Sequence record: PP885688.1
Strand: one strand, 5' to 3'
DNA: 64,000 nucleotides
This document shows, in pieces, positions 4,032-64,000 of the stretch. How positions within the stretch are numbered: the stretch's first letter is position 1; each line of letters starts with the position of its first letter. Position numbers and translations under genes: made by a program. The notes beneath the pieces were generated by a model that had not been told where the DNA came from, did no database searches, and saw only the letters and a program-made list of their open reading frames with translations.

Positions 4032-4050
4032 TAATTGAGGGACATTCAAC

Positions 4051-4694: not shown

Positions 4695-4695
4695 C

Positions 4696-4730: not shown

Positions 4731-4747
4731 AGTAAGAGGACACAGCC

Positions 4748-5182
4748 ATGGGCACACGCTGCAAAGCAGAGATCGAGTTCAAACAGAAATACCCCTTCGC
4801 CCACACACGTGGTACTGGGCGCTACATCGCGGGCTACGAGATCGTCCAGGTCTTCTGCGGCGATTACCTTTGCTCCGAGGGCCTCACCGCCGCCCGTGCT
4901 TACAAGGTCGCGCTGGAACTGGAGAGTGAAGGTCTCATCAGCCCTGACCCCGATGAGCAGCGGATTGTTGATGAGTGCCCGGCAGTGTCTACGCCGGTTG
5001 AGGGCCTCTGCTGGAAGGTGAGGACGGTCTTCGATCGCGGCCCCCAGTCTCACTACCGCTATAGCGTGACCGGCGACATCCTCGACACCGACCGCACCCC
5101 TCGGCCCTTCAGCTGGGCCGTCCCCGACATCAGCAACCCGACGTATGATCTGTCGGAGGCACGTTATCTCAACGAAATCTAA
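4748..5182 (+). CDS. Hypothetical protein (144 aa)
   Basis: AGAGGA RBS and class II motif upstream. Confidence 0.7.
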   Translation: MGTRCKAEIEFKQKYPFAHTRGTGRYIAGYEIVQVFCGDYLCSEGLTAARAYKVALELESEGLISPDPDEQRIVDECPAVSTPVEGLCWKVRTVFDRGPQSHYRYSVTGDILDTDRTPRPFSWAVPDISNPTYDLSEARYLNEI

Positions 5183-5193
5183 ACATTCCAAAA

Positions 5194-5871
5194 GTGAAAG
5201 AGAGTCAACACTTGAAGATTGCACTATTTCTCTGCCTTGCCATACCCTGCGCCGCCCAAACAGCGGGCAAGACCGCAACCAAGCCAGCACCTAAAGCAGC
5301 GCCAGGGGGGCCAACCCTGAAATCGCTCACAGGGGTCACGCTGTATGGGTGCCTCTACTACCCGGGGTCGGACAATCCGAGGGCCTCATTCAACCCGCAG
5401 TACTTCAACGCGACAGACGCCGACGATAAGCCAATAAACAATGATCTCGCCACCTATCAGTTCGAGACCGGTGACCAGATCCTGATCCGGGGAGCGCACA
5501 CCGATATGGCAATAGTGCCGGACCGACCTAAGAACCGCCCCACTGTGATGGTCACTCTGGACATCGAGAACAAGACCAACGCCGTGTGGGCCAGCGTCAA
5601 CGTCGAGGTGCCCAGGTCGCAGTTGACCTCAGCTGGAGTCCTGAAGGCCATTGACGACCAAGCGACCTGGTACAGCCGGACGCCGGTCAAAGATCACACG
5701 TGGCCGAGGATCGGGATGACTGAAAGCGATGTCCACTGCCGAATCGGCTATCCGCAGCACACCAACTCGGACGACCTGAGTGGCGACCAACTCGTCTACT
5801 ACGACGGTAGACTGTATGTGTACATCAGCAACCGCACTGGCCGAGTTACAAACGTCCAGAGCTCTGATTAG
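5194..5871 (+). CDS. Exported protein with C-terminal SmpA/BamE-like motif
   Basis: Signal peptide IALFLCLAIPCAAQ; IGMTESDVHCRIGYP...VYY...GRVTNVQS pattern. Confidence 0.6.
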   Translation: MKESQHLKIALFLCLAIPCAAQTAGKTATKPAPKAAPGGPTLKSLTGVTLYGCLYYPGSDNPRASFNPQYFNATDADDKPINNDLATYQFETGDQILIRGAHTDMAIVPDRPKNRPTVMVTLDIENKTNAVWASVNVEVPRSQLTSAGVLKAIDDQATWYSRTPVKDHTWPRIGMTESDVHCRIGYPQHTNSDDLSGDQLVYYDGRLYVYISNRTGRVTNVQSSD

Positions 5872-5882
5872 TAAGAGGACGT

Positions 5883-6179
5883 ATGGCAGAGAACAACGGA
5901 GACCACCACCCGAAGTTTCAGCTTGGTGGAATGACAATCACCCCAGACGCTACTGAGGCGCTGCAGAAGTCGGGGGACAACGTAGCTCTCCTGATTCGCA
6001 GACACATGTCAGGGGACTGGGGAGATCTGGACGACTACGACAAGAGCCAGAATGACGAAGGCGTCGTGCATGGTCTAAGAATCCTGTCGGCTTACACCTT
6101 ATCGTCGGGTGAAAAGCTCTGGGTGATCACCGAAGGCGACCGGTCCTTCACTACGGTGCTGACGCCTGACGAGTACTGA
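5883..6179 (+). CDS. Conserved plasmid/phage small protein (GDWG / WVITE..RS.TTVL.P.EY family)
   Basis: RHMSGDWGDL and KLWVITEGDRSFTTVLTPDEY signature of a widespread mobile-element family of unknown function. Confidence 0.75.
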   Translation: MAENNGDHHPKFQLGGMTITPDATEALQKSGDNVALLIRRHMSGDWGDLDDYDKSQNDEGVVHGLRILSAYTLSSGEKLWVITEGDRSFTTVLTPDEY

Positions 6180-6289
6180 CGAACCGTCTGCAGCTCAGCC
6201 ACATGTTCATCGCCATAGAGAGAAGTCTGCCGGGCATCAAAGCGTGCCTGGTCGAGTAGCTCTTCGGGAGATAACTTGCGCCGTGCCAT
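6092..6289 (-). CDS. Possible small hypothetical protein (65 aa)
   Basis: TAATG coupling to the upstream ORF, but it overlaps the convergent plus-strand gene by 88 nt. Confidence 0.35.
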   Translation of the reverse strand: MARRKLSPEELLDQARFDARQTSLYGDEHVAELQTVRQYSSGVSTVVKDRSPSVITQSFSPDDKV

Positions 6290-6762
6290 TAGATACGTGC
6301 TCCTCGCACCCTGAGGGCCAGCATGACGTCCGCGTCCATCGGAGGATGGTTTCCCAGCACACAATCCACAAGCAGCTTGCGCAGCGGCTTAGGATCGTTC
6401 CCTTCGCGAATAGCATCGGCCACCACGCGCACGGCGATACCACGGGAGACCGTTGGGCCCATCGTCTTCACGAACGCGCCCCACACCCCTCCTATGTCGT
6501 TGTTGATGGCATTCACGCAGTCGTTGATGACTGGCGTCTCCAGCTTGTAAGAGAGACCCAGCGTCGTCGCAGTCCGCTCCATGGAGGAGAGATCCGGAAT
6601 GACCAGGGTGAACTCACGATTCGGATACCGGCGGAGGACGAGACGCTCGACCTTAGTGTTCGTCCAGGAGACGGTGACGGCTTCATTGCTGAGAGGCAGC
6701 AGAGGTTCCATCTCGATGATGCCGGGACCGCCGTAGTTCTTCTGGACCTTGAGAGTGATCAT
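6289..6762 (-). CDS. Hypothetical protein (157 aa)
   Basis: ATGA overlap with the BCS1-like gene. Confidence 0.7.
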   Translation of the reverse strand: MITLKVQKNYGGPGIIEMEPLLPLSNEAVTVSWTNTKVERLVLRRYPNREFTLVIPDLSSMERTATTLGLSYKLETPVINDCVNAINNDIGGVWGAFVKTMGPTVSRGIAVRVVADAIREGNDPKPLRKLLVDCVLGNHPPMDADVMLALRVRGARI

Positions 6763-7988
6763 GCCTTACCCCTGGAAGCCATAGCCTGCGCGTCGGCAAT
6801 CGTTGTCTGCTCGGGCAGGGAAGCGCGGAACTCCTCCCATGACTTCTGCGGGAAGTACTCGGAGACCTTGTCGTAGAACCGGCGGAGCTCTTCTTCGCGG
6901 GCGAAGTCGACCACGAACTTGCGATCGATCCGGCCTGAGCGAACCAGTGCGGCGTCGATCTTCTCGGGCTCGTTCGCCGTCATGAAGATGATCCGGTCCT
7001 CACTGGCACCGAGACCGTCGATCGCATTCAGCAGATCAGACATGGTGATGCGTGCGTCCGATTCGCTCTCACGCGTCTGGGCGGCGGCGATACAGTCGAT
7101 ATCCTCGAAGACGACGATGGATGGCTTGGAGCACTGGTTGAGCAACTGGGACAGGCGCTCTCCATCCATACCCGTCGCCTGTAATGCCACAACGTAGACC
7201 GGCAGTTTCAGATGGGACGCGAGAGCGAGGATCATCGTAGACTTGCCGGTGCCCGGAGGTCCGGAGAGCTGGTAGCCCTTGCGGTACGGGAAGCCAAGCG
7301 CAGCGTACGCGTCCTTGCTCGCGAGGAACTTTTTGATATCGGCAACGATCTCGTCAATCAGCTCCGGCGGATAGAACGTGGTGTCGAGCTTTCGCGGCGA
7401 TATGGGCGAAGGCTCCCAGTTGCCATAGAGGTATCTGTAGAGGTCGACGTGCGGCGGCATGTTGGCGAGATAGTCGGCCTGGGCCTCGGCGAGGATGTCC
7501 ATGATGATCTCCCGGCGACGCGTGAACCATACCTGGATCCGCAGCCAGTGCATCTTCTTCGTCGTACCGGCAGCAGCTCCGGCAGGTGTAGCTTCATCCG
7601 GCCAGTGGTCGATGATCATCGGCAGCTTGTGCTTCCAGCGCATGTAATAGGTGCCATACGCGGGGATCAGACTGTAGCCGGGGCTGGATCCTTTGTGCTT
7701 GCGCTGAGAGGGTGAGTCGTCGTTCCGTTCCTTATTGCGGCGGAGCAGAAGAGCGCTGATACCCCGCGTCTTGAGGTGCTTCTCGACCCAGTGGCTCACC
7801 CATGCGTAAGCCTCGGGGTCGTCGTTGTCTTCCACGGTGATCGTCAGGCTGACTTTGTTGATGGCCCAGCCGATGGTGTGCTTGTAGATGAAGTCCCAGG
7901 CAGATTTGAGGCCGCCCGTCACCACCCCGACGCCAAGAATGGCCCAGGGTGGCACGGACTTCAGGAAGGCGGGTGATGTCAGAGGCAT
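6759..7988 (-). CDS. BCS1-like AAA+ ATPase (N-terminal TM, BCS1_N-like domain, AAA)
   Basis: N-terminal hydrophobic segment; TITVEDNDDPEAYAWV; Y.ALGFPYRKGYQLSGPPGTGKS; VVFEDID; LLNAIDG; FMTAN; DAALVRSGRID. Confidence 0.85.
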   Translation of the reverse strand: MPLTSPAFLKSVPPWAILGVGVVTGGLKSAWDFIYKHTIGWAINKVSLTITVEDNDDPEAYAWVSHWVEKHLKTRGISALLLRRNKERNDDSPSQRKHKGSSPGYSLIPAYGTYYMRWKHKLPMIIDHWPDEATPAGAAAGTTKKMHWLRIQVWFTRRREIIMDILAEAQADYLANMPPHVDLYRYLYGNWEPSPISPRKLDTTFYPPELIDEIVADIKKFLASKDAYAALGFPYRKGYQLSGPPGTGKSTMILALASHLKLPVYVVALQATGMDGERLSQLLNQCSKPSIVVFEDIDCIAAAQTRESESDARITMSDLLNAIDGLGASEDRIIFMTANEPEKIDAALVRSGRIDRKFVVDFAREEELRRFYDKVSEYFPQKSWEEFRASLPEQTTIADAQAMASRGKA

Positions 7989-8004
7989 GGCTCAGCCTTT
8001 CTGG

Positions 8005-9540
8005 TTACAGTTCGTCGTCGTCGAAGTCGAAGTTCAGAGGCTTGCGTGTGGAGACAGGTGCTGCGGCGGCCTTGACCGGCTCAGGCTTCGGAGCCTCAAC
8101 CACCTTGGCGACCTCGACCACAGGAGCGGGGACGATGACCTCTTCCTTGACCGGGGACGCAATGTCTTCCAGCTCATCGTCGAAGTCCACCACCTTGCGC
8201 GTCGGAATGGGCTGCTTGATCGGCTCGGCGGCAAACCCGACTGTGGGATCAACGACCTTCTTCTCCTCGATGATGCTTACCTCGGTGGGCTCGAAGAGAC
8301 GCTCAAGGTTTGCAGCCTCAGCCTGGGCGAGCATCTCGTCTTCCAGATGCTCCAACTCACTGTCGGAGACATCGGTCAGATCCGGTGCGCTGGCCTCGGG
8401 GTCGAGCTCGATGTGGTAGCCAGCGTCGCCCTCTTCGACGACCGACTCTGCTTCCTCGCTCTCGTCTTCGGACTCCTCATCGTCGTAGTCTTCGTTCTCC
8501 TCTTCAGGATCGTGAACTACGGTGACGGGCTGAGGTGTGCCAGTCTTGACGAAGGTGCCCTTGATCTCCGGCGTCTCGGCCACATCTTCTGCAGCTCTCT
8601 CGGCCAGCTCCAGCTCAATCTCCGCCGTGGCGACGGCTTCGGTCCAGTCTTCAGCTTCGACGGCGGGAGCAGCTTCCACAGCAGCCGCCGCGTCCGCGCG
8701 ATCTGCGGCCTGTTCCGCCGCGATCTCAGCATTCGCAATGGCGCGATCTTCGTCCGTCCAGTCATCGAAGTTGGCCTGCTTGATGGTGTCTTCCACGACG
8801 GCTGTGGCGATAGGCTCCACCACACCCTTCACTTCACCAGTCTTGGAGACGTAGGGAACGCTCTCTTCCTCACCCTCATCGTCGTAGCCATTGGAGAGGA
8901 CGCCGAGCTCGGGGCCGGTGCCGCTGATTCCCAGAGCGTTCGGCAGAAGGTTTGCCCAGGACGAGTTCGCTTGTTCGCGACCCAGATCGAAGGTGGTCTT
9001 CGCCATCGTCCGCTTGCTGTCGAGGCGCTTCACTTCGATCTTGAGAGCTTCGACCAGTGCTTCAATCGAAACGTCGGTCCGGTTCATCAGGCGTGAGTAC
9101 TCGCTGGTGGCGAGGTTCTTGATGTTGGTCGCGGGCAGCTTGATCTCTGCGTCCTGTAGGACCGAGAGCGCCGCCAGGTAGTACCACGACTCGAACGCGG
9201 CCCGGAGCTCATCGGAGTCCGACTTGGCTCGCATGAGATCGCCCTGGAAACGAATGACTTTGATCTTCCACTTCTCGATCTGGTCCTGGATGTCGCCGAG
9301 CGCGTTGAGCAGCTCCTGTTCGTATTTGACGGCGATGCCTTTGTTGACTGAGTCGAGCAGCTTGATGCGCTGGATCCCGTCGATGTTGTTCTGCAGGTAG
9401 CTGAAATGGTCCTCGAACGACACGTGCTTGTCGTCGGTCTTATAGTTCAGCGAGGCCTTCAGGTTCTCTACCTGGGTGAGGACGAAGGAGTCGGCGAGCA
9501 GGCTCTCAGCCTTCAGCAGGTTCATGATGTTGTTGCTCAT
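8005..9540 (-). CDS. Helical protein with long acidic low-complexity C-terminus (N-half possibly UvsY-like recombination mediator)
   Basis: N-terminal coiled coils, E/D/A-rich tail. The UvsY resemblance is by eye only. Confidence 0.6.
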   Translation of the reverse strand: MSNNIMNLLKAESLLADSFVLTQVENLKASLNYKTDDKHVSFEDHFSYLQNNIDGIQRIKLLDSVNKGIAVKYEQELLNALGDIQDQIEKWKIKVIRFQGDLMRAKSDSDELRAAFESWYYLAALSVLQDAEIKLPATNIKNLATSEYSRLMNRTDVSIEALVEALKIEVKRLDSKRTMAKTTFDLGREQANSSWANLLPNALGISGTGPELGVLSNGYDDEGEEESVPYVSKTGEVKGVVEPIATAVVEDTIKQANFDDWTDEDRAIANAEIAAEQAADRADAAAAVEAAPAVEAEDWTEAVATAEIELELAERAAEDVAETPEIKGTFVKTGTPQPVTVVHDPEEENEDYDDEESEDESEEAESVVEEGDAGYHIELDPEASAPDLTDVSDSELEHLEDEMLAQAEAANLERLFEPTEVSIIEEKKVVDPTVGFAAEPIKQPIPTRKVVDFDDELEDIASPVKEEVIVPAPVVEVAKVVEAPKPEPVKAAAAPVSTRKPLNFDFDDDEL

Positions 9541-9899
9541 TTTGTTTCGCTTTCCGCCTTCGCAAGGAAGGCTTCCAATTCTTCGGTGGTCTTGCCCTTG
9601 ATCTTTTGGTAGAGCGACTGGATCTTCGCCAAGCGAACGAAGTAGCCAGCGGTCTGCTTCTTGAACTGTTCGGCGTCTATCTCGCCGGTGGCGTATCGGG
9701 TTTGCTGCAGGGTCATCAGAGCGGTGGAGTAGAGATCCAGGCCGTCCTTCATGACGTCATCGGAGTCTTCGAGCGGAATCCCGGCGGACGTCTCGGGGAC
9801 CTTGGACGAGACGGAGAGGAATCTCCCCGTCCCGTTCCCATAGCTCTTGTCGCCAAACTCAAAGCTGACGGTTAGGCCGGTGATGCGTAGCTCGCTCAC
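9537..9899 (-). CDS. Hypothetical protein (120 aa)
   Basis: Coupled on both sides. Confidence 0.7.
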   Translation of the reverse strand: MSELRITGLTVSFEFGDKSYGNGTGRFLSVSSKVPETSAGIPLEDSDDVMKDGLDLYSTALMTLQQTRYATGEIDAEQFKKQTAGYFVRLAKIQSLYQKIKGKTTEELEAFLAKAESETK

Positions 9900-10198
9900 G
9901 AGATTACGTAGATCCCGTCTTCGGTCTCGTCGTCGCGGTCGTCCTGGAACTCGTCGTCGAACTCATCGTCGTCCTCGAAGTCCTCATCGTCCTCGTCGAA
10001 ATCGTCCTCATCTTCGTCGTCATCGTCGAAAATGGGGTCGGTGCCGTCGAAATCGCTATGTTCTTCGTCGTCTTCGTCGAAAAACTCATCGCCGTCCTCA
10101 TCGAGGCAGCTCAACGGGGCGAACGGGTGAAGTGGCGACATTGCCAGTAGGTGGAACGGTAAGTAAGGTGCTATTCCTGCGACGATCACTTCGGTCAC
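9896..10198 (-). CDS. Highly acidic (Asp/Glu-rich) small protein
   Basis: GTG at 10198 with GGAGG RBS; run of D/E/F residues. Confidence 0.6.
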   Translation of the reverse strand: MTEVIVAGIAPYLPFHLLAMSPLHPFAPLSCLDEDGDEFFDEDDEEHSDFDGTDPIFDDDDEDEDDFDEDDEDFEDDDEFDDEFQDDRDDETEDGIYVIS

Positions 10199-10214
10199 GA
10201 GAACCTCCACTCGC

Positions 10215-10250
10215 TAATACTCAAAATGGGGGCGCTTACCCAATTACTGG
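10215..10250 (-). promoter_or_regulatory. Class I bipartite promoter motif (variant)
   Basis: CCAGTAATTGGG-N16-GAGTATTA. Confidence 0.6.
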
Positions 10251-10252
10251 GC

Positions 10253-12256
10253 TCACATTCCCCAACGATTTTGTTGCTCCTCGAAATCCGCATGCAGAGA
10301 CGGCTTGACCTTCTTCGGTTTGGCACCCTCTTCGAAGACCATCTTGCGTTCGTCGTCGGCCTGGGCCTCGGCCAGCTGCGACCCACCGATGAAGGAGTTG
10401 AGGCTGACTGACTTGGTGTGGGCCTTCATCAGGGACAGGAACTCGGAGTCCTTCGCTGACTGCTCCATACCGGAGGCCATGTCGAAGATCTCGCGGTCGT
10501 CGAGCAGACCGGCGGAGTGACTCTCGCCGAGGATCTTCTCGAACAGCCCCTTTTTGCCCTTCAGCGTCTCGATCGCGTACTCATCGACCGTCCCGCGTCC
10601 GACCAGGCAGTGCAACGTGCAGGCGGAGTGCGGGCTGGCCATACGGACCATGCGGCCCACCAGCTGCAGCAGATCGCCCCAGCTCCAGCACATGTCCAGC
10701 TTGATCAGGTGGGCCGCCTGCTGAAGGTTCACGCCCTCGGTGGCCGCCGCGTTGATGAAGATGAGATCGTGGTCGCCATCGGGATCCTGGAAGAGGCGCT
10801 TGGCCTGGCTGCGCTGATCCTCGTTCTCCGCGCCGGTGATGCGCAGGAACTTCCGGTCCGTGAAGTGTCCCTCTTTGGTGAGCCACTCCAGCCGGTCGAT
10901 CCACGACTTCGACTTGGTGTAGACGATGACCTTCTCACCACGGAAGTCGCCGTCGAGCATGTCGAGCAGGGCCTCCTCTTTCGGTGAGAGGGTGCGGGTG
11001 AGGAACTTCTTCTTGTCGTTCACATCCAACAGCGCCGGGTGGTTGGCGACCAGCTGGTAGACCGAGAGCATCGTCATCTCGTTCTCTGGATCACGGTCGC
11101 GCGTGATGATCTCGCCATGCAACTTGATCACCGAAGGCGGCAGTTGGTACTTGCCGGACGGAATGTCCTCAAGCAGTAGTCGAGCCTGCTCCGGGTCGAG
11201 GTCGATCGGATGGATGATGGTGGTGAGGCGGGGTAGCTTCTCTTTGACCTGGCGCTGGGACCTGCCTAGAAAGAAGGGACGCATACCGGCCTTGAAGGTG
11301 GCGACGTTGCGATAGCCCTCAAGGACCTTCTTATGCTTGCCCTTGCCGATGAAGACGTTGCGGAAGATACAGAACCGCTCTTCAAACTCTGCCGGGACAC
11401 CGAACGGCTTGATCCCGATGGCCGAGGCGATCGAATACATCTCGTCGAGGCCGTTCTTGATGATCGTGGCCGTCAGAGCGTGGACGCGGGCGCAGGGCCT
11501 GGCGAGGATCTGTACCATGTTGCGGGTTGCGCCGCCGAGCGTCTTGAACTTCTGGCACTCATCGAGCACCATCAGTACGTCCTGGCCGTAGGGCTTCAGG
11601 ATCTTGATGAACTCCTTCACCTCGGAGGCAACGCGCTCACGCCCGTTGACCGTGGGATTACCATCAGCGTCGAACTTGCCCTCGACCTTCTTGCGTGTCC
11701 CCACCATCGAGGAGTACTTGCAAATCAGAACGTCGTGGTCATCCTTGGCGAGGAAGTCGGAGAGCTGGGCGAAGCGAGCTTCATACGACTTCAGCTTGTT
11801 GTACTTGTCTTTCATCACCGTGGTGCGCAGCGTAGAGAAGCGCTGATATTCGTCAGCCCACTGGCCGGTCGTCGACTTCGTCGTGAAGACGATGATCTTG
11901 AGGCGGGGCAGGCGATCTGTGAGCCAGCAGTGACTGATGATGGACTCGAGAGTCTTGCCTAGGCCTACTGAGTCCCCGTTGATGAAGCGGGGCATGCGGG
12001 ACATCGTCTGCGCCATCTGCAACTGGTACTGCTTGGGCTCCAGGACGACGCCGGTGTCGCGCTCACGGATGATGTCCCAGAGCGTGGTGCGAAGGCGTGT
12101 AGGCCACTTGAATGGGACTGGTCCATCGTCTGGGATCTTCCAGTTGCGAAGCTTGAACAGCTTCACCATGAGATCGTCCGGCAGACCTAGCTCCCGGGTG
12201 AAGGGAGTTATCAGCGGACACAGCTCTTCAACGTCGTCGTAAGTAGAAAGGGTCAC
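10253..12256 (-). CDS. SNF2-family (SF2) helicase/ATPase
   Basis: GDSVGLGKT, LDECQKFK, LTAT, EKVIVYT, TEGVNLQQA, QLVGRMVR. Confidence 0.9.
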   Translation of the reverse strand: MTLSTYDDVEELCPLITPFTRELGLPDDLMVKLFKLRNWKIPDDGPVPFKWPTRLRTTLWDIIRERDTGVVLEPKQYQLQMAQTMSRMPRFINGDSVGLGKTLESIISHCWLTDRLPRLKIIVFTTKSTTGQWADEYQRFSTLRTTVMKDKYNKLKSYEARFAQLSDFLAKDDHDVLICKYSSMVGTRKKVEGKFDADGNPTVNGRERVASEVKEFIKILKPYGQDVLMVLDECQKFKTLGGATRNMVQILARPCARVHALTATIIKNGLDEMYSIASAIGIKPFGVPAEFEERFCIFRNVFIGKGKHKKVLEGYRNVATFKAGMRPFFLGRSQRQVKEKLPRLTTIIHPIDLDPEQARLLLEDIPSGKYQLPPSVIKLHGEIITRDRDPENEMTMLSVYQLVANHPALLDVNDKKKFLTRTLSPKEEALLDMLDGDFRGEKVIVYTKSKSWIDRLEWLTKEGHFTDRKFLRITGAENEDQRSQAKRLFQDPDGDHDLIFINAAATEGVNLQQAAHLIKLDMCWSWGDLLQLVGRMVRMASPHSACTLHCLVGRGTVDEYAIETLKGKKGLFEKILGESHSAGLLDDREIFDMASGMEQSAKDSEFLSLMKAHTKSVSLNSFIGGSQLAEAQADDERKMVFEEGAKPKKVKPSLHADFEEQQNRWGM

Positions 12257-12262
12257 TTGGGC

Positions 12263-12298
12263 TAATACCCAAGCGACCCTCGTTTACCTGATTATTGA
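12263..12298 (-). promoter_or_regulatory. Class I promoter motif, leaderless geometry
   Basis: TCAATAATCAGG-N16-GGGTATTA, 6 nt before the GTG. Confidence 0.8.
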
Positions 12299-12302
12299 AG
12301 CT

Positions 12303-12584
12303 TTAGGAGCGACGAAATACAAAAGCTATCTCTTCGTTGGTCTGCTTGACCTGCCTAAGCTCCGAAGTGGTTGTGGATGCCGGATACGATACTCCTACGT
12401 GTGCGCAGGGATAGCTTGTAACAAGAACCCAGCCCTCCCGGGAAAGGGAATCGAACACAGAAGGAAGATGACCGTCACCGCCGTTGTTCTGAAGCTCGTC
12501 GGGGTATTCGTCGATGCCGTCACCGATCAGACGGAACGAGCCGTCCCTACGTGAGTAAAATCCTATTGCATGCTTTGCAGCCAT
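12303..12584 (-). CDS. Hypothetical protein (93 aa)
   Basis: Start MAAKHA at 12584. Confidence 0.6.
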   Translation of the reverse strand: MAAKHAIGFYSRRDGSFRLIGDGIDEYPDELQNNGGDGHLPSVFDSLSREGWVLVTSYPCAHVGVSYPASTTTSELRQVKQTNEEIAFVFRRS

Positions 12585-12618
12585 GTGTTGCCTTTCGTTG
12601 GTTGTACTTGTTGTGGGG

Positions 12619-13110
12619 TTACCGCTCGTAGCCGCCGTACCCCTCATCGAGGTGCACGATCTTGCTGTCCGAGTCGATGCCGTCGTCGAGGAACTTCGCC
12701 ACCATCCCGACAAAGCTGTCCTCTGTCACCTGTCCGAAGAACAAGGTAAGGATTGTTGTCCGCCTGGAGCGAGGATCGTTGTCCTTTGTGTGGCACAGGC
12801 GAAGCTGGTCGTTCTCATTTGCATGGGGCGACAGGAAGAAGTACTTATCCCCGACGGTGAACTGTGCCTCGAAGCGTCCGTCGAAGTTGAGCTCTCCGGG
12901 GAAAGACGGCATTTCCTTGATCTGGTCGAACTTGATGAAGTAGAACCGGTCTTCGAGGATGTTGCAGAAGCGGTTAAAGGCCCGCTTGCGATCCTCTTTC
13001 CTACGCAGCTCTACCCGCTCTACGATCCGGATGCGCTCGTCCTTGATGGCCTCAACACGCCTGGTGACAAGAGTATCGAAGCTAGTTGTGGGGCGATCTG
13101 AGACGATCAT
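12619..13110 (-). CDS. Hypothetical protein (163 aa)
   Basis: ATGA coupling to the PEP-CTERM gene. Confidence 0.65.
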   Translation of the reverse strand: MIVSDRPTTSFDTLVTRRVEAIKDERIRIVERVELRRKEDRKRAFNRFCNILEDRFYFIKFDQIKEMPSFPGELNFDGRFEAQFTVGDKYFFLSPHANENDQLRLCHTKDNDPRSRRTTILTLFFGQVTEDSFVGMVAKFLDDGIDSDSKIVHLDEGYGGYER

Positions 13111-13703
13111 GCGCGTATCTTTCTCACTGCAAGCTTGATGGTGCCGATCAGGCCAGTGCCGAGAAGCATCCAGGTGGACGGCTCGGGCGTAGGAGCGATC
13201 GGCGTTGTCGGAGGGCGGCTGGGAGTACTTGCGCCACCAATAGCTGTGGCGAAGTTGCTGAAGCCGGTAGAGACGGCCTGTCCACTGGTACTATCCGAGA
13301 CGCCGTACTCAGCTATGTCGGCCACATCAGGGATCCCGTCCGCACTGGTATCTGCAGCAAAGGGGAGGTCCGGGAGCTCAACATCCTCTGACGCGATCAT
13401 GACGTCCGTGTCCGCATCGATGGTGGCGAGCGGAGCGCAGGCCTTGTTGAAGTGGATGAGCGTCTGTTTCCGCGACATCTTTGGTCCCTTGGGAAGCGGC
13501 TTACCTTCGGCGAGCAGCTTCTTGTTGTAAACCGCCCAGGCGAGCAGGGTCGCAGCAGAGTGTTTGACCTTCTGGCTGACAACGGTGTAGCCGACGTGGC
13601 AGGCCTCTTCGGCTTGGCCTTTGAGTGGGTCCATGCTGAGGGCGATGAGGAACATGGAGAGGACGATGAACGGAGCCCGTAACTTGCGCAGGAAGGAAAC
13701 CAT
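13107..13703 (-). CDS. PEP-CTERM sorting-domain exported protein
   Basis: N-terminal signal peptide; C-terminus PTPEPSTWMLLGTGLIGTIKLAVRKIRA (PEP, TM helix, basic tail). Confidence 0.9.
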   Translation of the reverse strand: MVSFLRKLRAPFIVLSMFLIALSMDPLKGQAEEACHVGYTVVSQKVKHSAATLLAWAVYNKKLLAEGKPLPKGPKMSRKQTLIHFNKACAPLATIDADTDVMIASEDVELPDLPFAADTSADGIPDVADIAEYGVSDSTSGQAVSTGFSNFATAIGGASTPSRPPTTPIAPTPEPSTWMLLGTGLIGTIKLAVRKIRA

Positions 13704-13709
13704 GTTTGG

Positions 13710-13745
13710 TAATACCCAAACGGAGGCCGCTTCCTGGATTATTAT
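13710..13745 (-). promoter_or_regulatory. Class I promoter motif, leaderless geometry
   Basis: ATAATAATCCAG-N16-GGGTATTA, 6 nt before the ATG. Confidence 0.8.
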
Positions 13746-14518
13746 TTTTCCTTTTTTGCGATAAGTGTTTCGGACACTCCCGACGGCAACCCGTGTGCAT
13801 TCTCCAGTGCCCTACGCTGCAGGGCTGTCCCACCCCTGAAACCTCTAAGGTGAGGTCCCGATCTAACTTCCATTGGAATGTGAGAGAACAGGTGAGGGTG
13901 CGAATTCAGGGCTTGTCCTAACCCCACTGCATCATTTTTGATGAACCAGCCAATGGTCTTGAGAGAACCACCGTTTGAGTCGGCGATACTTTCTGCGATG
14001 GGTACCCAGTCTGCAGGGCGCTTATATCCTTGCCTCGGAAGATGTTTGAATGCATCTGGGTTTTTGGCAACTATGTGTATCAGCCCGGGGTAACCATTCT
14101 GGGCCAGCCAAGTTGTACTTGGCATGAACCCGGAGTTTTCTGTGGCGAGTTTTTCAGCCTCCACCACCCAGTCAGACACTGATCTGAATCGGCGATCTTG
14201 CACCAAGTGATTGAATAGCTCGGGGCAATTCCTGACAACCACAGCAAGGCCACTGTAACCATTCTGCTTCAGCCATTTTTGATTATGAAGAACGCCGTTG
14301 TTGTCTGCGGCCAAACCGTTGGCAACAGAGACCCATTCTTTAGGGGTGCGTTTCACCCGTCCCCTAGTACGAAGTTTGTGAGGCTCCCAATCGAAGTTCG
14401 GATACCTACCTTCAACCACCGCGATCTGCTCTTTAGTCAGAAGCCCTTCCCGTTTTTGGTACCGCAAACGTGAGAAGTATCCGTTTATCTCTAGCCGTGT
14501 CTTCCGGTCTGTGCTCAC
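13742..14518 (-). CDS. Repeat protein: helicase-associated-like N-motif plus 3 x ~55-aa repeats
   Basis: EGLLTKEQIAVVEGRYPNFDW, then three W..AE.LA..N.G.L...WL..NGY.GL.....P..F.HL units; paralog of the next gene. Confidence 0.75.
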   Translation of the reverse strand: MSTDRKTRLEINGYFSRLRYQKREGLLTKEQIAVVEGRYPNFDWEPHKLRTRGRVKRTPKEWVSVANGLAADNNGVLHNQKWLKQNGYSGLAVVVRNCPELFNHLVQDRRFRSVSDWVVEAEKLATENSGFMPSTTWLAQNGYPGLIHIVAKNPDAFKHLPRQGYKRPADWVPIAESIADSNGGSLKTIGWFIKNDAVGLGQALNSHPHLFSHIPMEVRSGPHLRGFRGGTALQRRALENAHGLPSGVSETLIAKKEK

Positions 14519-15597
14519 GCAGCCTCCGACGCGCCGATTGTCACGCCAAACTTGATCTCCAGAGCACGACGCTGCTCCGGCGTACCGTCACGGAACTTCT
14601 TGATGCCACCGCCGCCCTTATGAGCCACGATCTTGGGGATATGCGCAAAGGTCGCGGGGTCCGTGCTGAGGCGAGACGACAACGCCGCATGTGTTTTCTG
14701 GAGGGTACTGATCATAGGCAACGCTCCACCGTTCGCCTCTGCTAGCTGCTCAGCCATATGGGCGGCCTCTTGCTTGGACATCAACAAAGTCTCACGGTTG
14801 ATGTGTGCGAAGGCCTCGGGGTGTTTGTTGATCTTGGTCGCAAGTGTTCTGTGCCCTAGCGTGGCCAGCTTTGAGAAGGGGGGCAGCTTCCCGTGTTCCT
14901 TGGCCAAGTCCTCAGCCATCTTGACATACTCGGGGAGTGACTTCTGAGCCGACTCCACTCGTTGTAGATGAGCGAAGAGATCTGGATAGGTGTTCATGCA
15001 GGCGATGAGCCCCGCCAGGCCTTTCGCCATGAGTGCTGAGTGGGCTGGGACGACACCGTTGTTCTCCCGTGCCAGCTCCTCGGCGACGGGGACCCACTCG
15101 GCCCGCTTCTTGAAGTGGCCTTGTGGCTTATCCTGCGGGATATGTTTGAAGGCGTCGGGGTGCTTCCGCATCATAGCGGACAGGCCGATGTAGTTGTTGG
15201 TCAGGAGCCACCGGTCAGAGGGTAGGTTGCCACCTTTCTCAGCCGCCAACTTCTCAGCTGAGAGAACGTGATCTTGATAGTTCAGGACCCGGACCCGATC
15301 CTGTTTAATGTGCGCGAACTCTTCTGGAAATTTACACATCCTCGACACCAGTGATGCATAGCCGTTCTTCTGGAGCCAACCGGAACCCTGGAGCAGGCCG
15401 CCGTTCTCTGCTGCCAACTGTTCGGCAACCTTGACCCACTTTTCCGTGGTCCGATTATTAGCCCGTGGAGCCCAGTCCCAATCGGGGTACCTGGTCTCTA
15501 CGACGGCGATCTGCTGCTTCGTGAGGTGGCCCGAATGGTAACGCACACGTAGGTGAGCGAAGTAGCTATGGAGTTGTTCTTTGGTAAGGGTTTCCAT
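14515..15597 (-). CDS. Repeat protein: helicase-associated-like N-motif plus 5 x ~55-aa repeats
   Basis: SGHLTKQQIAVVETRYPDWDW, five repeats, and a C-terminal FRDGTPEQRRALE motif shared with the paralog. Confidence 0.75.
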   Translation of the reverse strand: METLTKEQLHSYFAHLRVRYHSGHLTKQQIAVVETRYPDWDWAPRANNRTTEKWVKVAEQLAAENGGLLQGSGWLQKNGYASLVSRMCKFPEEFAHIKQDRVRVLNYQDHVLSAEKLAAEKGGNLPSDRWLLTNNYIGLSAMMRKHPDAFKHIPQDKPQGHFKKRAEWVPVAEELARENNGVVPAHSALMAKGLAGLIACMNTYPDLFAHLQRVESAQKSLPEYVKMAEDLAKEHGKLPPFSKLATLGHRTLATKINKHPEAFAHINRETLLMSKQEAAHMAEQLAEANGGALPMISTLQKTHAALSSRLSTDPATFAHIPKIVAHKGGGGIKKFRDGTPEQRRALEIKFGVTIGASEAA

Positions 15598-15599
15598 GA

Positions 15600-17525
15600 C
15601 TACGCCTGCACCCGGCTCTTCGCCTTACCCTTGTTGGCCATCTGGTCGCGGAGGTCCGCCTTGGCGAGGAAATCCGCCTGCCATGCCTCGAAGCCCGCGT
15701 CGAATACTTCACGCAGCTTGCGGAGGTCGCGCTCAGCATACTCACCAACGAAGGCGACCGAGCGGTCCGACTCGCTGACAACTTCCATCAGTTTGTCGAA
15801 GGATGCGGAGACGAAAGATACGTCGATACCCTTCATGCGCAGGGTGTCGGCCTGATTGCGGTGACCAGCCAGCCAGCAGCGTCCCAGGAACGTGTTCGCA
15901 GCTATTGCGATCTCACGCTTGAAGTCGCCGACCTCGTGCTCGTCGAGGACACTGGCGATCGCTGCATGGATCAAGTTCGAATCCGTGCGCTTCTCGACCG
16001 GGATGCTCTCGACTTCGGTGATGAGGTCGCGCTTGAAGGCGAGGTACGAGATCCCCTGCTCTTCGAGAGTCGTCTGGAGGGTGCGGGTGGCGGATCCCGA
16101 TGAGCGGGGAGCGCCGGGGAGGGAAGGGAGCAACACAGGGTGGAAGCCCTCGTCGAACTGCATGCACACCAGCAGTGCATTGGTGCGGTTGGCGAGGATG
16201 TCCTTGATGCTGTCATCCTTCGAGGGCTCAGCGAACTCAGGGATGTAGTTGAAGACGCGGACGACTTCCTTGTGAGGAGCGAAGCGGCGGAATGGGCGGC
16301 CCATGGTCTGGACGGCGAGGGTGATGCTGCCCTCGATCGCGAGGTTATGAAGGCGGGAGCAGGGGCACCAGTCCGTACCTTCACGGCCCAGCATGCAGGT
16401 AACGACGACGCGATACGTCGGCTGACCATCGGCAGGCTTCTTCGGCTCCGCCAGCAGCTTAGCCTTGTTCGTATCCTGCGTCGACTTAGTCACCAGATCA
16501 AGGACCTGGGGCTCACCGTTGACCGGCGGGAACATCTTGTTGAGACGGCGGAGCAGCTCCTCGTGCTCGGTGCCGCCGGTACGCCACTTGCGAGTCGTCG
16601 CGGGGATGATTACCATGTGGCGCTCGTTGGGTTCGGACATGATCCGGTTGAAGCAGCTCATGATCGGATTGCCGTCGTACTGGACATACTCCAGGGCGAA
16701 CTCACGGATGCCGAGAGTGACCCAGTGATCGAAGAAGGGGAGATAGTAGACCGTGAACAGCTTTCCGATCTTGCCGGAGAGCATATCCGCCTGGTCGCCA
16801 CGGAAGGGAGTCGCCGTCGTGAGCACCAGCTTGGTGGTCTTCGAGCGGTGAGCGACGATGAAGGCGCAGATACGACCGAGGTTGTTAGCCTCCTCGCGGT
16901 CGTCACGCTCTTCCTGCGAGGTGAGCAGCTCATCCTTCAGGTGGAAGACGTTGCTGATGTGGTGGGCCTCGTCAACGCGCAGAGTGAGGTTCTTGATGGC
17001 AAGCATCCGCTCGTCTTCGGTCATCCGGCTCCATGCAATCGAGAGTGCGGTGTGAGAGGTGACGGCGATCATGCCGGTGATGGTCTTCGTGCCGCTGATG
17101 CCGGGGGCGAGGATGTTGGCCGGGGTGAGCATCCAGTAGATGAGGCGGGCGATGACGTCATTGTCGAAGACGCTGAGGAAGCGCTGGTTGGGGTGTACAT
17201 ACCACTTGTAGGCGCTGCCATCGAGGAACACGGTCTCGTCTACGAAACCGGCGTGAATGTGCGCCTGGGGGACGATCACCAGCTGCTTCTGCTTGAACTT
17301 GCTCTGGACGATGTCATAGGTGCCGAGGGTCAGCTGCAGATACGACTTGCCGCTGCCGCAGAAGGCGACCACGAGAGAGAGCAGCGCGTCCTTGACCTGG
17401 CTGAACGCGTCGGTCTGCCATGCACGCATTCCCCGTTCGATCGCATCGGGGGCCTGCCAGTTAGAGTTGTGACCGTTGACAGAGAAGTTTGAAGTGTTCG
17501 AAATATTCAGGGTAGTGCCAGACAT
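15600..17525 (-). CDS. Superfamily 2 (DExH-box) helicase-like ATPase, ResIII-like
   Basis: AFCGSGKS (I), VDEAHH (II), TATPFRGD (III), MLGREGTDW (V), QTMGRPFR (VI). Confidence 0.85.
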   Translation of the reverse strand: MSGTTLNISNTSNFSVNGHNSNWQAPDAIERGMRAWQTDAFSQVKDALLSLVVAFCGSGKSYLQLTLGTYDIVQSKFKQKQLVIVPQAHIHAGFVDETVFLDGSAYKWYVHPNQRFLSVFDNDVIARLIYWMLTPANILAPGISGTKTITGMIAVTSHTALSIAWSRMTEDERMLAIKNLTLRVDEAHHISNVFHLKDELLTSQEERDDREEANNLGRICAFIVAHRSKTTKLVLTTATPFRGDQADMLSGKIGKLFTVYYLPFFDHWVTLGIREFALEYVQYDGNPIMSCFNRIMSEPNERHMVIIPATTRKWRTGGTEHEELLRRLNKMFPPVNGEPQVLDLVTKSTQDTNKAKLLAEPKKPADGQPTYRVVVTCMLGREGTDWCPCSRLHNLAIEGSITLAVQTMGRPFRRFAPHKEVVRVFNYIPEFAEPSKDDSIKDILANRTNALLVCMQFDEGFHPVLLPSLPGAPRSSGSATRTLQTTLEEQGISYLAFKRDLITEVESIPVEKRTDSNLIHAAIASVLDEHEVGDFKREIAIAANTFLGRCWLAGHRNQADTLRMKGIDVSFVSASFDKLMEVVSESDRSVAFVGEYAERDLRKLREVFDAGFEAWQADFLAKADLRDQMANKGKAKSRVQA

Positions 17526-17574
17526 TTTTTCTTATCCTCGTAAAAGTGCCACTCTTGTGGCGACTGATACTGGT

Positions 17575-17610
17575 TGATACCCAAAAAAGCTTTCCGACCC
17601 TGAATATCAA
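17575..17610 (-). promoter_or_regulatory. Class I promoter motif
   Basis: TTGATATTCAGG-N16-GGGTATCA upstream of the helicase operon. Confidence 0.75.
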
Positions 17611-17656
17611 AATGAAGATATCTGTGGAAAACTTTGTTTCTTGGCTGCTGGATGAG

Positions 17657-17684
17657 AAAGGCCCGCCGAAATACAGGCGGGCTT
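17657..17684 (-). terminator. Intrinsic terminator
   Basis: GCCCGCC/GGCGGGC stem followed by TTTC on the minus strand. Confidence 0.6.
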
Positions 17685-17706
17685 GGGGATGTCGCGGGTA
17701 GGAGTC

Positions 17707-17949
17707 CTAATCCCGATAGGTCTCAAGCATCCCGATGAGGTAGGCGAGGGTGATCGGCTTATAGGACTCGCCGTTCTCCATCAGCTCGATCTTGAACTCG
17801 TCGGTGAGGACCATCGGGCCAAGGAAGTCATCGGGGATCACCACCTCCAGCGGTCCACCAGGGTAGCCGTCTTCGAACTTCATCCGAAGAGTGATGTTTT
17901 CGTATTCTTGACCGTTGACTTTCAGGCTTAGCTTCTCTGCAGTTGGCAT
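17707..17949 (-). CDS. Hypothetical protein (80 aa)
   Basis: Two nt from the upstream stop, followed by a terminator. Confidence 0.65.
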   Translation of the reverse strand: MPTAEKLSLKVNGQEYENITLRMKFEDGYPGGPLEVVIPDDFLGPMVLTDEFKIELMENGESYKPITLAYLIGMLETYRD

Positions 17950-17951
17950 AT

Positions 17952-18575
17952 CTAGAACTCAATCTCCGGGATATCGGTGGTGGCGGAGACTGGCTCCGGG
18001 GAGGGTTTCGTCGCTACCGGCTGAATCTCTTCGTCCGGCGAGTTGAGGAGGATGGCTTCGAGCTTAGTGCAGCGTTGCTCGAACCAGAGGGCACGGGATT
18101 CATCACCCTGGAAGTAGGGAGAGGGGCTCTGGAGTAGGTCCTTCATTGTCTGGAGATACCCGGGCAGAGCCCCTTTCTTGATCGTCTGCTTGTACCGGTC
18201 GATGCGGCCCCGGGCAGATCTCTTGACGGCGTTGTACTTCTTCTCAGCGGCGCGGAGGCGGCTGATCTCGGCCTGCTCGGCAAAGGATGCGGCTACAGCC
18301 TTACTGTGGATCGTGAGGAACTGGAGCCCGGTGCTCAGCTTGATGTAGAGATCCGGATTCCAGCGCTCAAAGTGTGGCAGTGCAGCATCGGAGATGGTCA
18401 TACGGCCCTTGCCCGACTTAGGCTTGATGGTGAAGCAGATCCGGGTCGGCTGCTGAGTAACTACGCAGACTCTTTTGTTCTCTTCACCGGCGTCGTACAC
18501 CTGACCCATGAAGTCCCAGTTCTGAGGATCCTGACCTAGTCGGTTCGTGATTTCCGTACGTGAAAGAACTTCCAT
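17952..18575 (-). CDS. Hypothetical protein (207 aa), probably leaderless
   Basis: ATG 5 nt after a class II motif. Confidence 0.75.
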   Translation of the reverse strand: MEVLSRTEITNRLGQDPQNWDFMGQVYDAGEENKRVCVVTQQPTRICFTIKPKSGKGRMTISDAALPHFERWNPDLYIKLSTGLQFLTIHSKAVAASFAEQAEISRLRAAEKKYNAVKRSARGRIDRYKQTIKKGALPGYLQTMKDLLQSPSPYFQGDESRALWFEQRCTKLEAILLNSPDEEIQPVATKPSPEPVSATTDIPEIEF

Positions 18576-18580
18576 AACTA

Positions 18581-18615
18581 CAACCTACGGAGTGAAACAG
18601 CCCAAAGATGACTTT
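18581..18615 (-). promoter_or_regulatory. Class II promoter motif
   Basis: AAAGTCATCTTTG-N13-CGTAGGTTG. Confidence 0.8.
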
Positions 18616-18626
18616 GGGTGGAAAAT

Positions 18627-18932
18627 TTATGCGGCCTGCGCGGGCGTCCACCGCTCCATGAATCCGGCCAGTACAGAGGCCAGCGGCGTGTAGTCGGTCT
18701 CACGGAGCGAGTGGGCGATCCGCTCAAGCTGTGGCCGAGTGAAGCCCTGCAGTGCAGTCATGACCCGAGTAAACTCGATGATCGTGCCGTAGGACTCGAA
18801 CATGCAGGTACGCCCGCAGATCATCGACACAAAGCACTGTTCAGAGCTTAGGTAGTCGATGGAGTAGTCGTAGACAGCCCTTACGGAAGATTCGGAGTTG
18901 TCTAGTACGTCGCGCAGTTCTGGCGTCATCAT
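18627..18932 (-). CDS. Hypothetical protein (101 aa)
   Basis: GAGGG RBS and its own class II motif. Confidence 0.7.
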   Translation of the reverse strand: MMTPELRDVLDNSESSVRAVYDYSIDYLSSEQCFVSMICGRTCMFESYGTIIEFTRVMTALQGFTRPQLERIAHSLRETDYTPLASVLAGFMERWTPAQAA

Positions 18933-18951
18933 GTCTTTTATCCCTCGACCT

Positions 18952-18986
18952 CAACCTACAGAGTGAAACAACCCAAAGATGACTTT
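18952..18986 (-). promoter_or_regulatory. Class II promoter motif
   Basis: AAAGTCATCTTTG-N13-TGTAGGTTG; the spacer is nearly identical to the 18581 copy. Confidence 0.8.
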
Positions 18987-19013
18987 GGTACAAGGCTATT
19001 TAGCGTCCGAGGG

Positions 19014-19598
19014 TCACTTGACGGCGCAGAGTTGTGCTTCAACTGCCGGGGCTAGCTTGCCAGTACCACACAGGGCATTGCCCACCTTTTCGGTGTTGCT
19101 TCCATCACCCACCGGGTAAGGTGTAAAGTCCCCCAACGTCTCATACTCGTGGTCCTTGCTATCCGGATCCGGGAACCAGAAGGTGCAGCGCACCGTTTCG
19201 TTCGGGTGCTTTTTACCGGGCGCAACACAAGAGGAAGCGAATAGAACTTTTGTGCCCGGCTGCACGTTGTCCAGAAACCATTTGTTGTGGACAACAGGAG
19301 AGGTTCGGGCACTTGGCGGAGTCAGCAGTGCGAGGGCAATCGTATGACCCTTGTTGATAGGGGCCTCGACGCGGAAGTTACCGGCATCAGTGTAGAGCAG
19401 GTGAACTCCCTGTCCACCTTGATCCAACTTGGCACCCGTGGTGGTTTTATCAAGGGTCACGTCGCCGCCGGTGTAGACGCGTACGTTTTGATCGAGTGTC
19501 GCCAGTTGATACTGGCTAACATGCTTATAGGTCTTGTCTTTCTGGGCGAAGACAGACCCAGACAGAAGCAACAGTACAGCGGTCATTCTTAGTTTCAT
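19014..19598 (-). CDS. Exported hypothetical protein
   Basis: Signal peptide MKLRMTAVLLLLSGSVFAQ; four Cys. Confidence 0.75.
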   Translation of the reverse strand: MKLRMTAVLLLLSGSVFAQKDKTYKHVSQYQLATLDQNVRVYTGGDVTLDKTTTGAKLDQGGQGVHLLYTDAGNFRVEAPINKGHTIALALLTPPSARTSPVVHNKWFLDNVQPGTKVLFASSCVAPGKKHPNETVRCTFWFPDPDSKDHEYETLGDFTPYPVGDGSNTEKVGNALCGTGKLAPAVEAQLCAVK

Positions 19599-19695
19599 CA
19601 GACTCTCTTTTCTTGGTACACCACACAATCGCCGCTTGTTTCAAGCCGAGGAGATCACTCCGCAACTTATCGGCTGTTGTGTGTGCCCATAAACT

Positions 19696-19730
19696 CAACC
19701 TACAAACCAAAAACCTCCAAAGATGACTTT
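19696..19730 (-). promoter_or_regulatory. Class II promoter motif
   Basis: AAAGTCATCTTTG-N13-TGTAGGTTG. Confidence 0.8.
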
Positions 19731-20320
19731 CAGGCGACGTTCGACGCCAAATATTCTGCCTGTCCGTCCAGCCACTTCAGCAACTGCTCCGCCCCGGGCT
19801 TCCGGACGTTCAGCTGCTTTCCGGTGAGTGCGTAGAGACCCTCCTCCAGCTCCCAGAAGTAGGGAAGCGGCAGCGTCTTGAGGATCTTCTTCTGGACCAG
19901 CACCAGCGCCCAGAGATAGGCGTAGAATCCATGCGCTGGCTTCGAGTTGATCAACCGGCGGCCTTCCCCGAAGCATGTCGTGTGCTCGAAGACGGCTTCG
20001 TTGGCGACAGCGTCCTGCAGCTCGTGCGCCATGTTGCCGACCGGCGCAGTACCGGCGTCACGGGATGCCATGCTGTGGAGCGTCAGTGACCCGTGGAGCG
20101 ACACTTCGACCTTGCCGATGTCATCACCCTTACCGGCCTGGATCATCTCCTCTGTGGTGCAGGGATTGCCTTCCCGGAATCGTTTGCGGACGAAGAGCTG
20201 CTCCCGCTGTACATGTCCCGGCAGCATCGCGAAGAGCTCCGCGTCGAGGACGGGATCGACAAAGCGTCCGGCCCACGGCAGGTAGTCGAAGGCGCTCTTT
20301 TTTGCTTTGACCTTATCCAT
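19730..20320 (-). CDS. Hypothetical protein (196 aa)
   Basis: Start MDKVKA overlapping the upstream stop. Confidence 0.65.
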   Translation of the reverse strand: MDKVKAKKSAFDYLPWAGRFVDPVLDAELFAMLPGHVQREQLFVRKRFREGNPCTTEEMIQAGKGDDIGKVEVSLHGSLTLHSMASRDAGTAPVGNMAHELQDAVANEAVFEHTTCFGEGRRLINSKPAHGFYAYLWALVLVQKKILKTLPLPYFWELEEGLYALTGKQLNVRKPGAEQLLKWLDGQAEYLASNVA

Positions 20321-63877: not shown

Positions 63878-64000
63878 TTAGTTGCTGGAGGTGAGGGTCT
63901 TGGCGCGGCGGTACGCCATGCCAGCGGCACCGAAGAGACCGGTTCCGAGCAGGACCAGTGAGCCGGGTTCAGGGGTAGGTGCGACCGGCACGCTCTGGCT
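63878..64000 (-). CDS. PEP-CTERM protein, C-terminal 40 aa (gene continues beyond the window)
   Basis: Reverse complement reads SQSVPVAPTPEPGSLVLLGTGLFGAAGMAYRRAKTLTSSN*; missed by the ORF track. Confidence 0.85.
   Translation of the reverse strand, partial: SQSVPVAPTPEPGSLVLLGTGLFGAAGMAYRRAKTLTSSN

Follow-up and report, generated by a model that had tools for sequence, protein, structure and literature searches.

Among the phage genes that modify the host envelope, those for the T5 Llp and phi80/N15 Cor lipoproteins and for the T4 Imm and Sp proteins encode small envelope proteins that change the cell surface or entry. Sorting by the PEP-CTERM/exosortase pathway is likewise already known; we know of no exosortase structure, no defined product and no simple assay, and the handling of substrates is, to our knowledge, poorly understood. 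The searchable literature yielded no study of a phage-encoded exosortase substrate, only a passing note in a preprint on Dehalococcoides elements. The gene considered here, gp97 of Tunturiibacter phage Tunturi_5, may join the two subjects. It lies in a stretch of 64,000 nucleotides (nt) of sequence record PP885688.1, called the window below (window base 1 is record base 62001), and on balance we think it somewhat probable that its product, though encoded by the phage, serves the exosortase pathway of the host as a substrate. On that account gp97 would resemble Llp, Cor and Imm/Sp as a small phage protein with a host-type sorting signal, placed in the envelope; it would differ in the signal, which is of the PEP-CTERM/exosortase kind in gp97 and of the lipoprotein or plain membrane kind in the others.

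By analogy, the best experimentally grounded model for the role of the gp97 family may be PepA. This small, sigma-54-dependent PEP-CTERM protein, from Betaproteobacteria that form flocs (Aquincola tertiaricarbonis, Zoogloea), increases bound exopolysaccharide and decreases the soluble fraction (PMC9850573). The likeness is one of description: both are small, secreted and PEP-CTERM-tailed, with a link to sigma-54 and to exopolysaccharide/exosortase genes. Unlike gp97, PepA comes from another phylum and is chromosomal, with no phage copy described.

The original prediction, made from the letters of the window alone, took the region for part of a mobile element, and left room for its being host chromosome. 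It is phage DNA, neither host chromosome nor integrated element: the 8 kb around gp97 are 100% identical to Tunturi_5 (PP885688.1, 308,711 bp), an isolated, myovirus-like jumbo phage with 350 open reading frames (ORFs) and 43 transfer RNAs (PMC11924767). The record names Tunturiibacter psychrotolerans X4BP1 as host, and tundra soil in Finland as source. GenBank labels the protein (XOB77540.1) ‘hypothetical protein’. In the portions of the Tunturi_5 paper accessible to us, text and three supplementary files, neither PEP-CTERM nor exosortase is mentioned, and gp179, the second gene discussed below, stands in the accessible annotation table as ‘No_PHROG, unknown function’ (PMC11924767).

The gp97 frame, from ATG to TGA, encodes four successive parts (Table 1). 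The N-terminus carries a net charge of +3 in residues 1-10, a hydrophobic core at 11-23 and G-Q-A at 29-31; by inspection and hydropathy, residues 1-31 are probably a Sec-type signal peptide, cleaved after G-Q-A31, and the homologues P0001, P0005 and P0006 have the same layout with an A-x-A-like site. The basic domain that follows, of ~60 amino acids (aa), is flanked by the invariant C35 and C89 and contains the likewise invariant W56 and P71 (alignments A3 and A4, defined below); the second invariant cysteine suggests a disulfide bond. Structure prediction with AlphaFold2 (AF2) gave a pLDDT of 42 from three sequences, and from 11 relatives a mean of 60, with only two confident helices, at 50-65 and 78-89 (block-mean pLDDT ~66-91); a terminal helix is predicted as well. 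The acidic linker is predicted to be disordered (pLDDT <50 at residues 94-163) and is hypervariable in length among relatives. In the tail, P-E-P stands at 173-175, a hydrophobic helix at 176-192 and the basic R-K-I-R at 194-197, and the stop follows residue 198.

This tail is recognized by two models, each above its curated cut-off: PF07589 scores 26.4 bits at aa 171-194 (Pfam cut-off 20.7; 30.3 bits in the six-frame match) and TIGR02595 reaches 18.4 bits (cut-off 16), while none of 14 control genomes has a PF07589 match over cut-off. The PEPxxWA-CTERM variant NF035944 reaches 17.6 bits, below its cut-off of 35, and the named PEP-CTERM families (NF038129, NF038119 and others) were rejected, their best score being 20.5 bits against 65, with matches to the tail only. 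The body finds no match by PDB profile search, in Pfam or in PHROGs; a search of the ESM Atlas returns PEP-CTERM clusters only, commonest in Acidobacteriota. A six-frame search of the whole record with PF07589 gives exactly two matches over cut-off, gp97 and gp179, and a like search for exosortase (PF09721) gives none at E<=10. Three claims of the original prediction thus stand: a signal peptide (here by inspection) joined to a PEP-transmembrane-basic tail, a first of two PEP-CTERM genes, and a missing exosortase, the last two now extended from the window to the complete phage genome.

The protein also has cellular relatives. On a 1.22-Mb contig (L005) of the Acidobacteriaceae metagenome-assembled genome CAVZPQ01 (G001), a match to the tail led to a full ORF of 205 aa at 4545-5162, with a gp97-like plan and the same tail start, PEPSTWMLL. 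The gp97-family profile matches its N-terminal domain with 98.8% probability (E 4e-17, hhalign), so gp97 is homologous to cellular proteins over body and tail alike. The genes around it are of the ordinary chromosomal sort; they encode an epimerase, two sigma-54 activators, FeoB and an oxidoreductase. The domain profile (A4) finds one copy each in 22 of the 61 genomes of this genus, and finds the domain in 2 of 151 genomes sampled across the Acidobacteriaceae; in 13 of 13 loci the cellular gene stands directly behind an orthologous, receiver-less sigma-54 activator. In one genome, G163, family gene and activator lie inside an XrtA/PEP-CTERM exopolysaccharide locus, with a PrsR-like response regulator, a nucleotide-sugar dehydrogenase, a second PEP-CTERM protein, the XrtA/PEP-CTERM-system glycosyltransferase TIGR03013 (446.9 bits, cut-off 393), a tyrosine autokinase, a chain-length determinant and XrtA itself (TIGR03109, 210.7 bits, cut-off 208). 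In G152, G158, G160, G163, G179, G183, G184 and G205 the family gene and an exosortase share a contig and lie 8-13 kb apart. An exosortase is present in 57 of the 61 genus genomes, as against 88 of the 151 across the family; the tail flavour PTPEPxxxxLLGTGL, found in both phage proteins, occurs in 20 of 61 and 4 of 151, respectively. The 61-genome sample includes one unpublished genome (G208), which is among the 57 positives and is negative in the other two genus counts; it bears on nothing else reported here. In metagenomes, the cellular clade comprises more than 100 clusters (107), labelled ‘hypothetical protein’ or not at all, apart from one ‘PEP-CTERM motif’; the labels suggest uncultured genomes.

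Cellular family members (L005:4545-5162 and L133:3968-4573) agree with gp97 in signal peptide, Cys-bracketed domain of ~55-60 aa with invariant C, W, P and C, low-complexity spacer, and a tail beginning PEPS(T/S)WMLL. They differ from it in several respects: the spacer is Pro-rich in the cellular members and acidic in gp97; the cellular family has an H-H / A-H-P-N-W-H-P motif that gp97 lacks; and the cellular genes follow a sigma-54 activator, whereas gp97 follows phage helicase-region genes and a phage motif. Neither an upstream sigma-54 activator nor the context of an XrtA locus was seen at gp97 or at the other phage copies. A sigma-54 promoter consensus was looked for upstream of the L005 homologue and not found.

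Relatives of gp97 are rare in searchable collections: a word search found two, and a search by profile through 1.84 billion representative proteins turned up 12. Ten of these 12 make up, with gp97, the 11 sequences of alignment A3; A4 is a domain-only alignment and profile. In A3 the common plan starts with a signal peptide; next come the domain, in which C35, W56, P71 and C89 do not vary, and a hypervariable spacer. A PEP-type tail is present in 9 of the 11. Among 50,697 isolated-phage records, Tunturi_5 alone has the gene, and no family member was found in the IMG/VR database by a profile-derived pattern. Matches from a single-sequence scan of IMG/VR were discarded, one (L011) as a spurious acyltransferase and one (L010) as a match to the tail only.

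Where the surroundings of these relatives are informative, they are phage-like (one contig, L017, and four short ones were uninformative). Contigs L003 and L004 are syntenic with Tunturi_5. L003 is colinear with the window from 25.4 to 10.8 kb at protein identities of 37-74%, its family gene standing between thymidylate kinase and ligase and the Tunturi_5 copy after the helicase block. On L004 (region 3089-4271) the family gene (P0002; 57% identity to gp97 by tblastn) adjoins a gp94 homologue of 88% identity; P0002 ends after the conserved domain and has no tail, and a 275-aa signal-peptide protein of another kind stands in place of tail, gp96 and gp95. On L018 the family gene has a gp95 homologue beside it, and the contig also carries phage-type NAD-salvage genes, a ligase and a thymidylate-synthase-like gene; L012 has a gp100-like helicase, and L016 a HAD_SAK_2 neighbour. 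Most members carry a His-rich motif, H-H / A-H-P-N-Y-H-P, in place of which gp97 and P0002 have K-H and A-E-G-K-P-L-P.

In a tree of the domain, weakly resolved with its 65 columns, a branch with support 82/74 separates all ten cellular sequences from the phage copies and from three further copies whose origin is unknown; gp97 and P0002 are sisters (97/93). This split implies that the Tunturi_5 gene is not a recent pick-up. As far as alignment and tree can tell, gp97 is a member of the phage clade of a not previously named family, and that clade is one that has been maintained and diversified.

The fit of the tail to an exosortase was modelled with the XrtA of G163 and gp97 residues 150-198, in three runs with three controls. 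The complex scored 0.68 (median of three runs; best control 0.00), a mark reached by 51 of 78 solved complexes and by 2 of 108 mismatched pairs; such a pass speaks for likeness, not for binding in the cell, and the modelled XrtA is not that of the host. At least 91% of contacts were common to the runs, with a partner pLDDT of at least 62. The modelled interface would involve gp97 166-195 and XrtA 198-226 and 255-288, among them C206, part of the C-S-G-I-R motif, and H272; we take the region with these two residues to be catalytic, from what is known of the family.

The original prediction had the element probably borrowing the host's sorting pathway. Support for this part is real but indirect: it comes from the homology of gp97, body and tail, to cellular proteins encoded in or near the XrtA locus, from the retention of the tail in most phage relatives and from the model. 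We infer an exosortase in the actual host from the two conserved tails of the phage, since 42% of the sampled family genomes lack one, and this shortfall itself weighs against the proposal. So do the reservation just attached to the model and the poor prediction of the body fold. P0002, a close relative on phage DNA, does without a PEP-CTERM tail, so the family body can persist without sorting; the His-rich motif is lost in gp97 and P0002, which may therefore not act as the cellular protein does; and the genus that holds the cellular clade may not be Tunturiibacter.

If gp97 is nonetheless an exosortase substrate, events might run as follows. During infection the gene would be transcribed from the phage-specific GGGTATTAC element, outside host sigma-54 control; the protein would be exported through Sec, held in the inner membrane by its tail helix and then captured by a host exosortase of XrtA type; the exosortase would cleave at P-E-P, and body and spacer would pass to the envelope or the exopolysaccharide layer. 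There, in the least certain step, the body would mimic or displace the host family member and so alter the hold on the polysaccharide coat. The purpose can be guessed at: a block to superinfection, or progeny that are not trapped, or are protected. The roles in receptor masking, exclusion or biofilm offered with the original prediction are speculation. Bolder, and tentative at best, is the idea that a jumbo soil phage lineage took over a substrate encoded in the XrtA/exopolysaccharide locus, gave it its own promoter and uses it to reprogram the coat of the host.

Another way to understand the C-terminal helix is as a plain anchor in the inner membrane, with no processing by exosortase. The disulfide-bonded domain, on its long spacer, would then act in the periplasm against the entry of competing phage DNA, on cell-wall enzymes or in lysis. 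An N-terminal signal, a long spacer and a C-terminal helix are typical of membrane-tethered periplasmic phage proteins (unimolecular spanins, T4 Imm/Sp), and gp97 has this topology; an exosortase is found in just 58% of the sampled family genomes; and P0002 works, if it works at all, without a tail. The tail, on the other hand, passes two PEP-CTERM models and is not a generic helix; its PEPSTWMLL is common to gp97 and to cellular homologues whose family sits, in G163, in the XrtA locus; 9 of 11 relatives retain it, next to a spacer that varies freely; and in the model it docks on XrtA where the controls score null. Nor is gp97 a unimolecular spanin, because no lipobox precedes C35 (E-E-A-C), which lies 12 residues past the hydrophobic core. 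We consider the anchor unlikely.

Alternatively, the tail could be the active part: as a decoy it would jam the host exosortase, leave the PEP-CTERM proteins of the host unsorted and loosen the exopolysaccharide coat. Loss of the His-rich motif in gp97 and P0002 is what one would expect were the body of lesser importance, the model places the tail with high confidence in the active-site region, and the phage promoter motif would permit high expression outside sigma-54 control. Against these points, the body keeps its four invariant residues and is clearly conserved across the phage clade, and P0002 retains the body and not the tail, the opposite of what a decoy predicts; the idea seems to us improbable. 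That gp97 is a functionless passenger, a host gene acquired by chance and drifting, would suit its differing position (behind the helicase block in Tunturi_5, flanked by thymidylate kinase and ligase in L003) and the truncation of one relative, but is very hard to credit when the copies on phage DNA make up a diversified clade with a deep split between it and the cellular one, when at least four clearly phage-like contigs preserve intact frames, signal peptides and the invariant Cys, Trp and Pro, and when gp97 has its own promoter-like element and a likely translational coupling to gp96.

Returning to gp97 as an exosortase substrate, its interest extends beyond one phage. PEP-CTERM genes are common on metagenomic viral contigs, yet they go undiscussed in the phage literature searched; if the bolder idea of a takeover by a jumbo phage lineage holds, exosortase sorting would be a general and overlooked target of surface manipulation by phages. 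Acidobacteria are genetically difficult to study. A plaque-forming phage with a cultured host would provide a natural expression system in which to follow the cleavage and destination of a PEP-CTERM protein, and with Tunturi_5 and Tunturiibacter the handling of substrates by exosortases could be studied for the first time in a culturable pair. The same pair offers a way to ask whether phages alter the exopolysaccharide coat through the exosortase pathway, and gp97 itself a first functional handle on a family whose genes sit in the XrtA locus of Acidobacteriaceae abundant in soil.

The second PEP-CTERM protein, gp179, is like gp97 in its signal peptide and PEP-CTERM tail, with an A-P-T-P-E-P ... 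L-L-G-T-G-L flavour; the body is unrelated. Homologues of gp179 are found on the IMG/VR viral contigs L041, L051 and L094, each together with a gp90 homologue. The tail pattern PEPxxxxLLGTGL occurs in 91 stretches of IMG/VR and was a true C-terminal tail in 80 of 83 matches inspected; the positive contigs (L020-L099) range in size up to 231 kb, and some may include host flanks. As a separate observation, an unrelated viral contig of low G+C content (31%; IMGVR_UViG_3300033562_002048, L010:6643-8093) has two adjacent PEP-CTERM genes, one gp179-like and the other with the tail PEPSTWMLL.

Table 1. Positions of gp97, its parts and associated sequence features, in window coordinates unless noted
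Feature	Position	Strand	Basis
gp97 coding sequence, PEP-CTERM protein, 198 aa + stop	13107..13703	-	ORF list, translation; GenBank XOB77540.1
Probable signal peptide, residues 1-31	13611..13703	-	hydropathy and charge; layout also in P0001, P0005, P0006
Basic domain, net +7, residues 32-93	13425..13610	-	alignments A3, A4; AF2; hhalign
Acidic linker, net -12, Ser/Thr/Ala/Pro/Gly-rich, residues 94-165	13209..13424	-	composition, AF2, A3
PEP-CTERM sorting tail, residues 166-198	13110..13208	-	PF07589, TIGR02595, six-frame match at record 75122-75193
ATGA overlap, gp97 stop / gp96 start	13107..13110	-	sequence and annotation
Promoter-like element upstream of gp97	13704..13726	-	sequence; motif recurrence
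GGTATTAS core, sites 1-6	752-759, 12262-12269, 13709-13716, 22710-22717, 24862-24869, 27182-27189	-	
GGTATTAS core, sites 7-12	31138-31145, 31664-31671, 41209-41216, 44260-44267, 54680-54687, 60869-60876	-	
AAAGTCATCTTTGG...TGTAGGTTG element	upstream of genes ending 18575, 18932, 29279, 40488	-	
AAAGTCATCTTTGG...TGTAGGTTG element	upstream of genes starting 4051, 4748	+	
AAAGTCATCTTTGG...TGTAGGTTG element	upstream of gp179 (L002:6540-6640)		
gp179, second PEP-CTERM gene, 3' end	63878..64000 (record 125878-126516; runs off window)	-	PF07589, translation

The gap upstream of gp97 contains CCTCC, 7 nt and TATTAC. A small hairpin (GTTTGG / CCAAAC) encloses the GGTATTAC core (13709-13716); the 5 nt that separate this core from the ATG hold no Shine-Dalgarno sequence. 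GGTATTAS occurs 12 times in the window where 0.9 would be expected, always on the coding strand, which is the minus strand; the recurrent form is often CCTCC, 6-7 nt and (GGG)TATTAG/C, upstream of genes. At least 13 genes have the motif upstream. The distance from its end to the start codon is 5 nt at four of these: gp94, gp97 and the two that start at 44254 and 60128. The ‘class I promoter’ of the original prediction therefore corresponds to a real recurrent, promoter-like motif. The spacing in the four genes suggests leaderless messenger RNAs, and a leaderless message is plausible for gp97, given the 5 nt and the missing Shine-Dalgarno sequence; the (GGG)TATTAG/C element may be the promoter of a phage-directed polymerase. 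A scan with the sigma-70 consensus found nothing at gp97. The exact 17-nt hairpin upstream of gp97 occurs once in the window, the repeated unit being the shorter GGGTATTAS core.

A second upstream element consists of AAAGTCATCTTTGG, ~12-15 nt and TGTAGGTTG, followed by a normal ribosome site. The two PEP-CTERM genes fall under different motif classes, because gp179 has this element, with a GGAG ribosome site, upstream.

The neighbourhood of gp97 in Tunturi_5 is one of replication genes. Its place directly after a helicase-repeat operon, noted in the original prediction, is confirmed by the gene order: gp100 (a weak ResIII/helicase match), the repeat proteins gp99 and gp98, a gap of 38 nt, and gp97. 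Downstream, the ATGA overlap makes translational coupling of gp97 and gp96 likely. Further on, gp95 (window 12303-12584), which has no Pfam match, has a homologue of 40% identity at L018:9716-10627, on a distant phage contig of 48% G+C; this co-occurrence hints that gp95 and gp97 travel together.

Some labels nearby deserve caution. The genes gp98 and gp99 (window 13742-15597) are labelled ‘DNA helicase’, and no helicase domain is found in them in Pfam or PHROGs; both are internally repetitive, with the unit N-G-G-x-L ... W-L ... N-G-Y ... H-I. In the gp90-gp91 region (window 6759-9540), the ‘major head protein’ gp90 matches ATPase/clamp-loader PHROGs (phrog_7485, 10401 and 168), and the ‘tape measure’ gp91, very acidic, lies with replication genes; the two labels look doubtful.

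Comparison of window positions 1-20000, as DNA, with the 151 family genomes gave gene-level matches of 65-72% only. One short match stands apart and is unexplained: 31 nt at window 19762-19792 agree at 97% with an Acidobacteriaceae sequence (L135, G147:C2:2314743-2314773). A spacer of a CRISPR array was considered there and rejected, no direct repeats being found around the match. Finally, the unannotated gap of 486 nt between gp110 and gp111 (window ~23372-23860, minus strand) contains a homologue of the HAD_SAK_2 gene of L003 (66% over 198 aa), matched by L016 as well; a gene is therefore probably missing from the record at this point.

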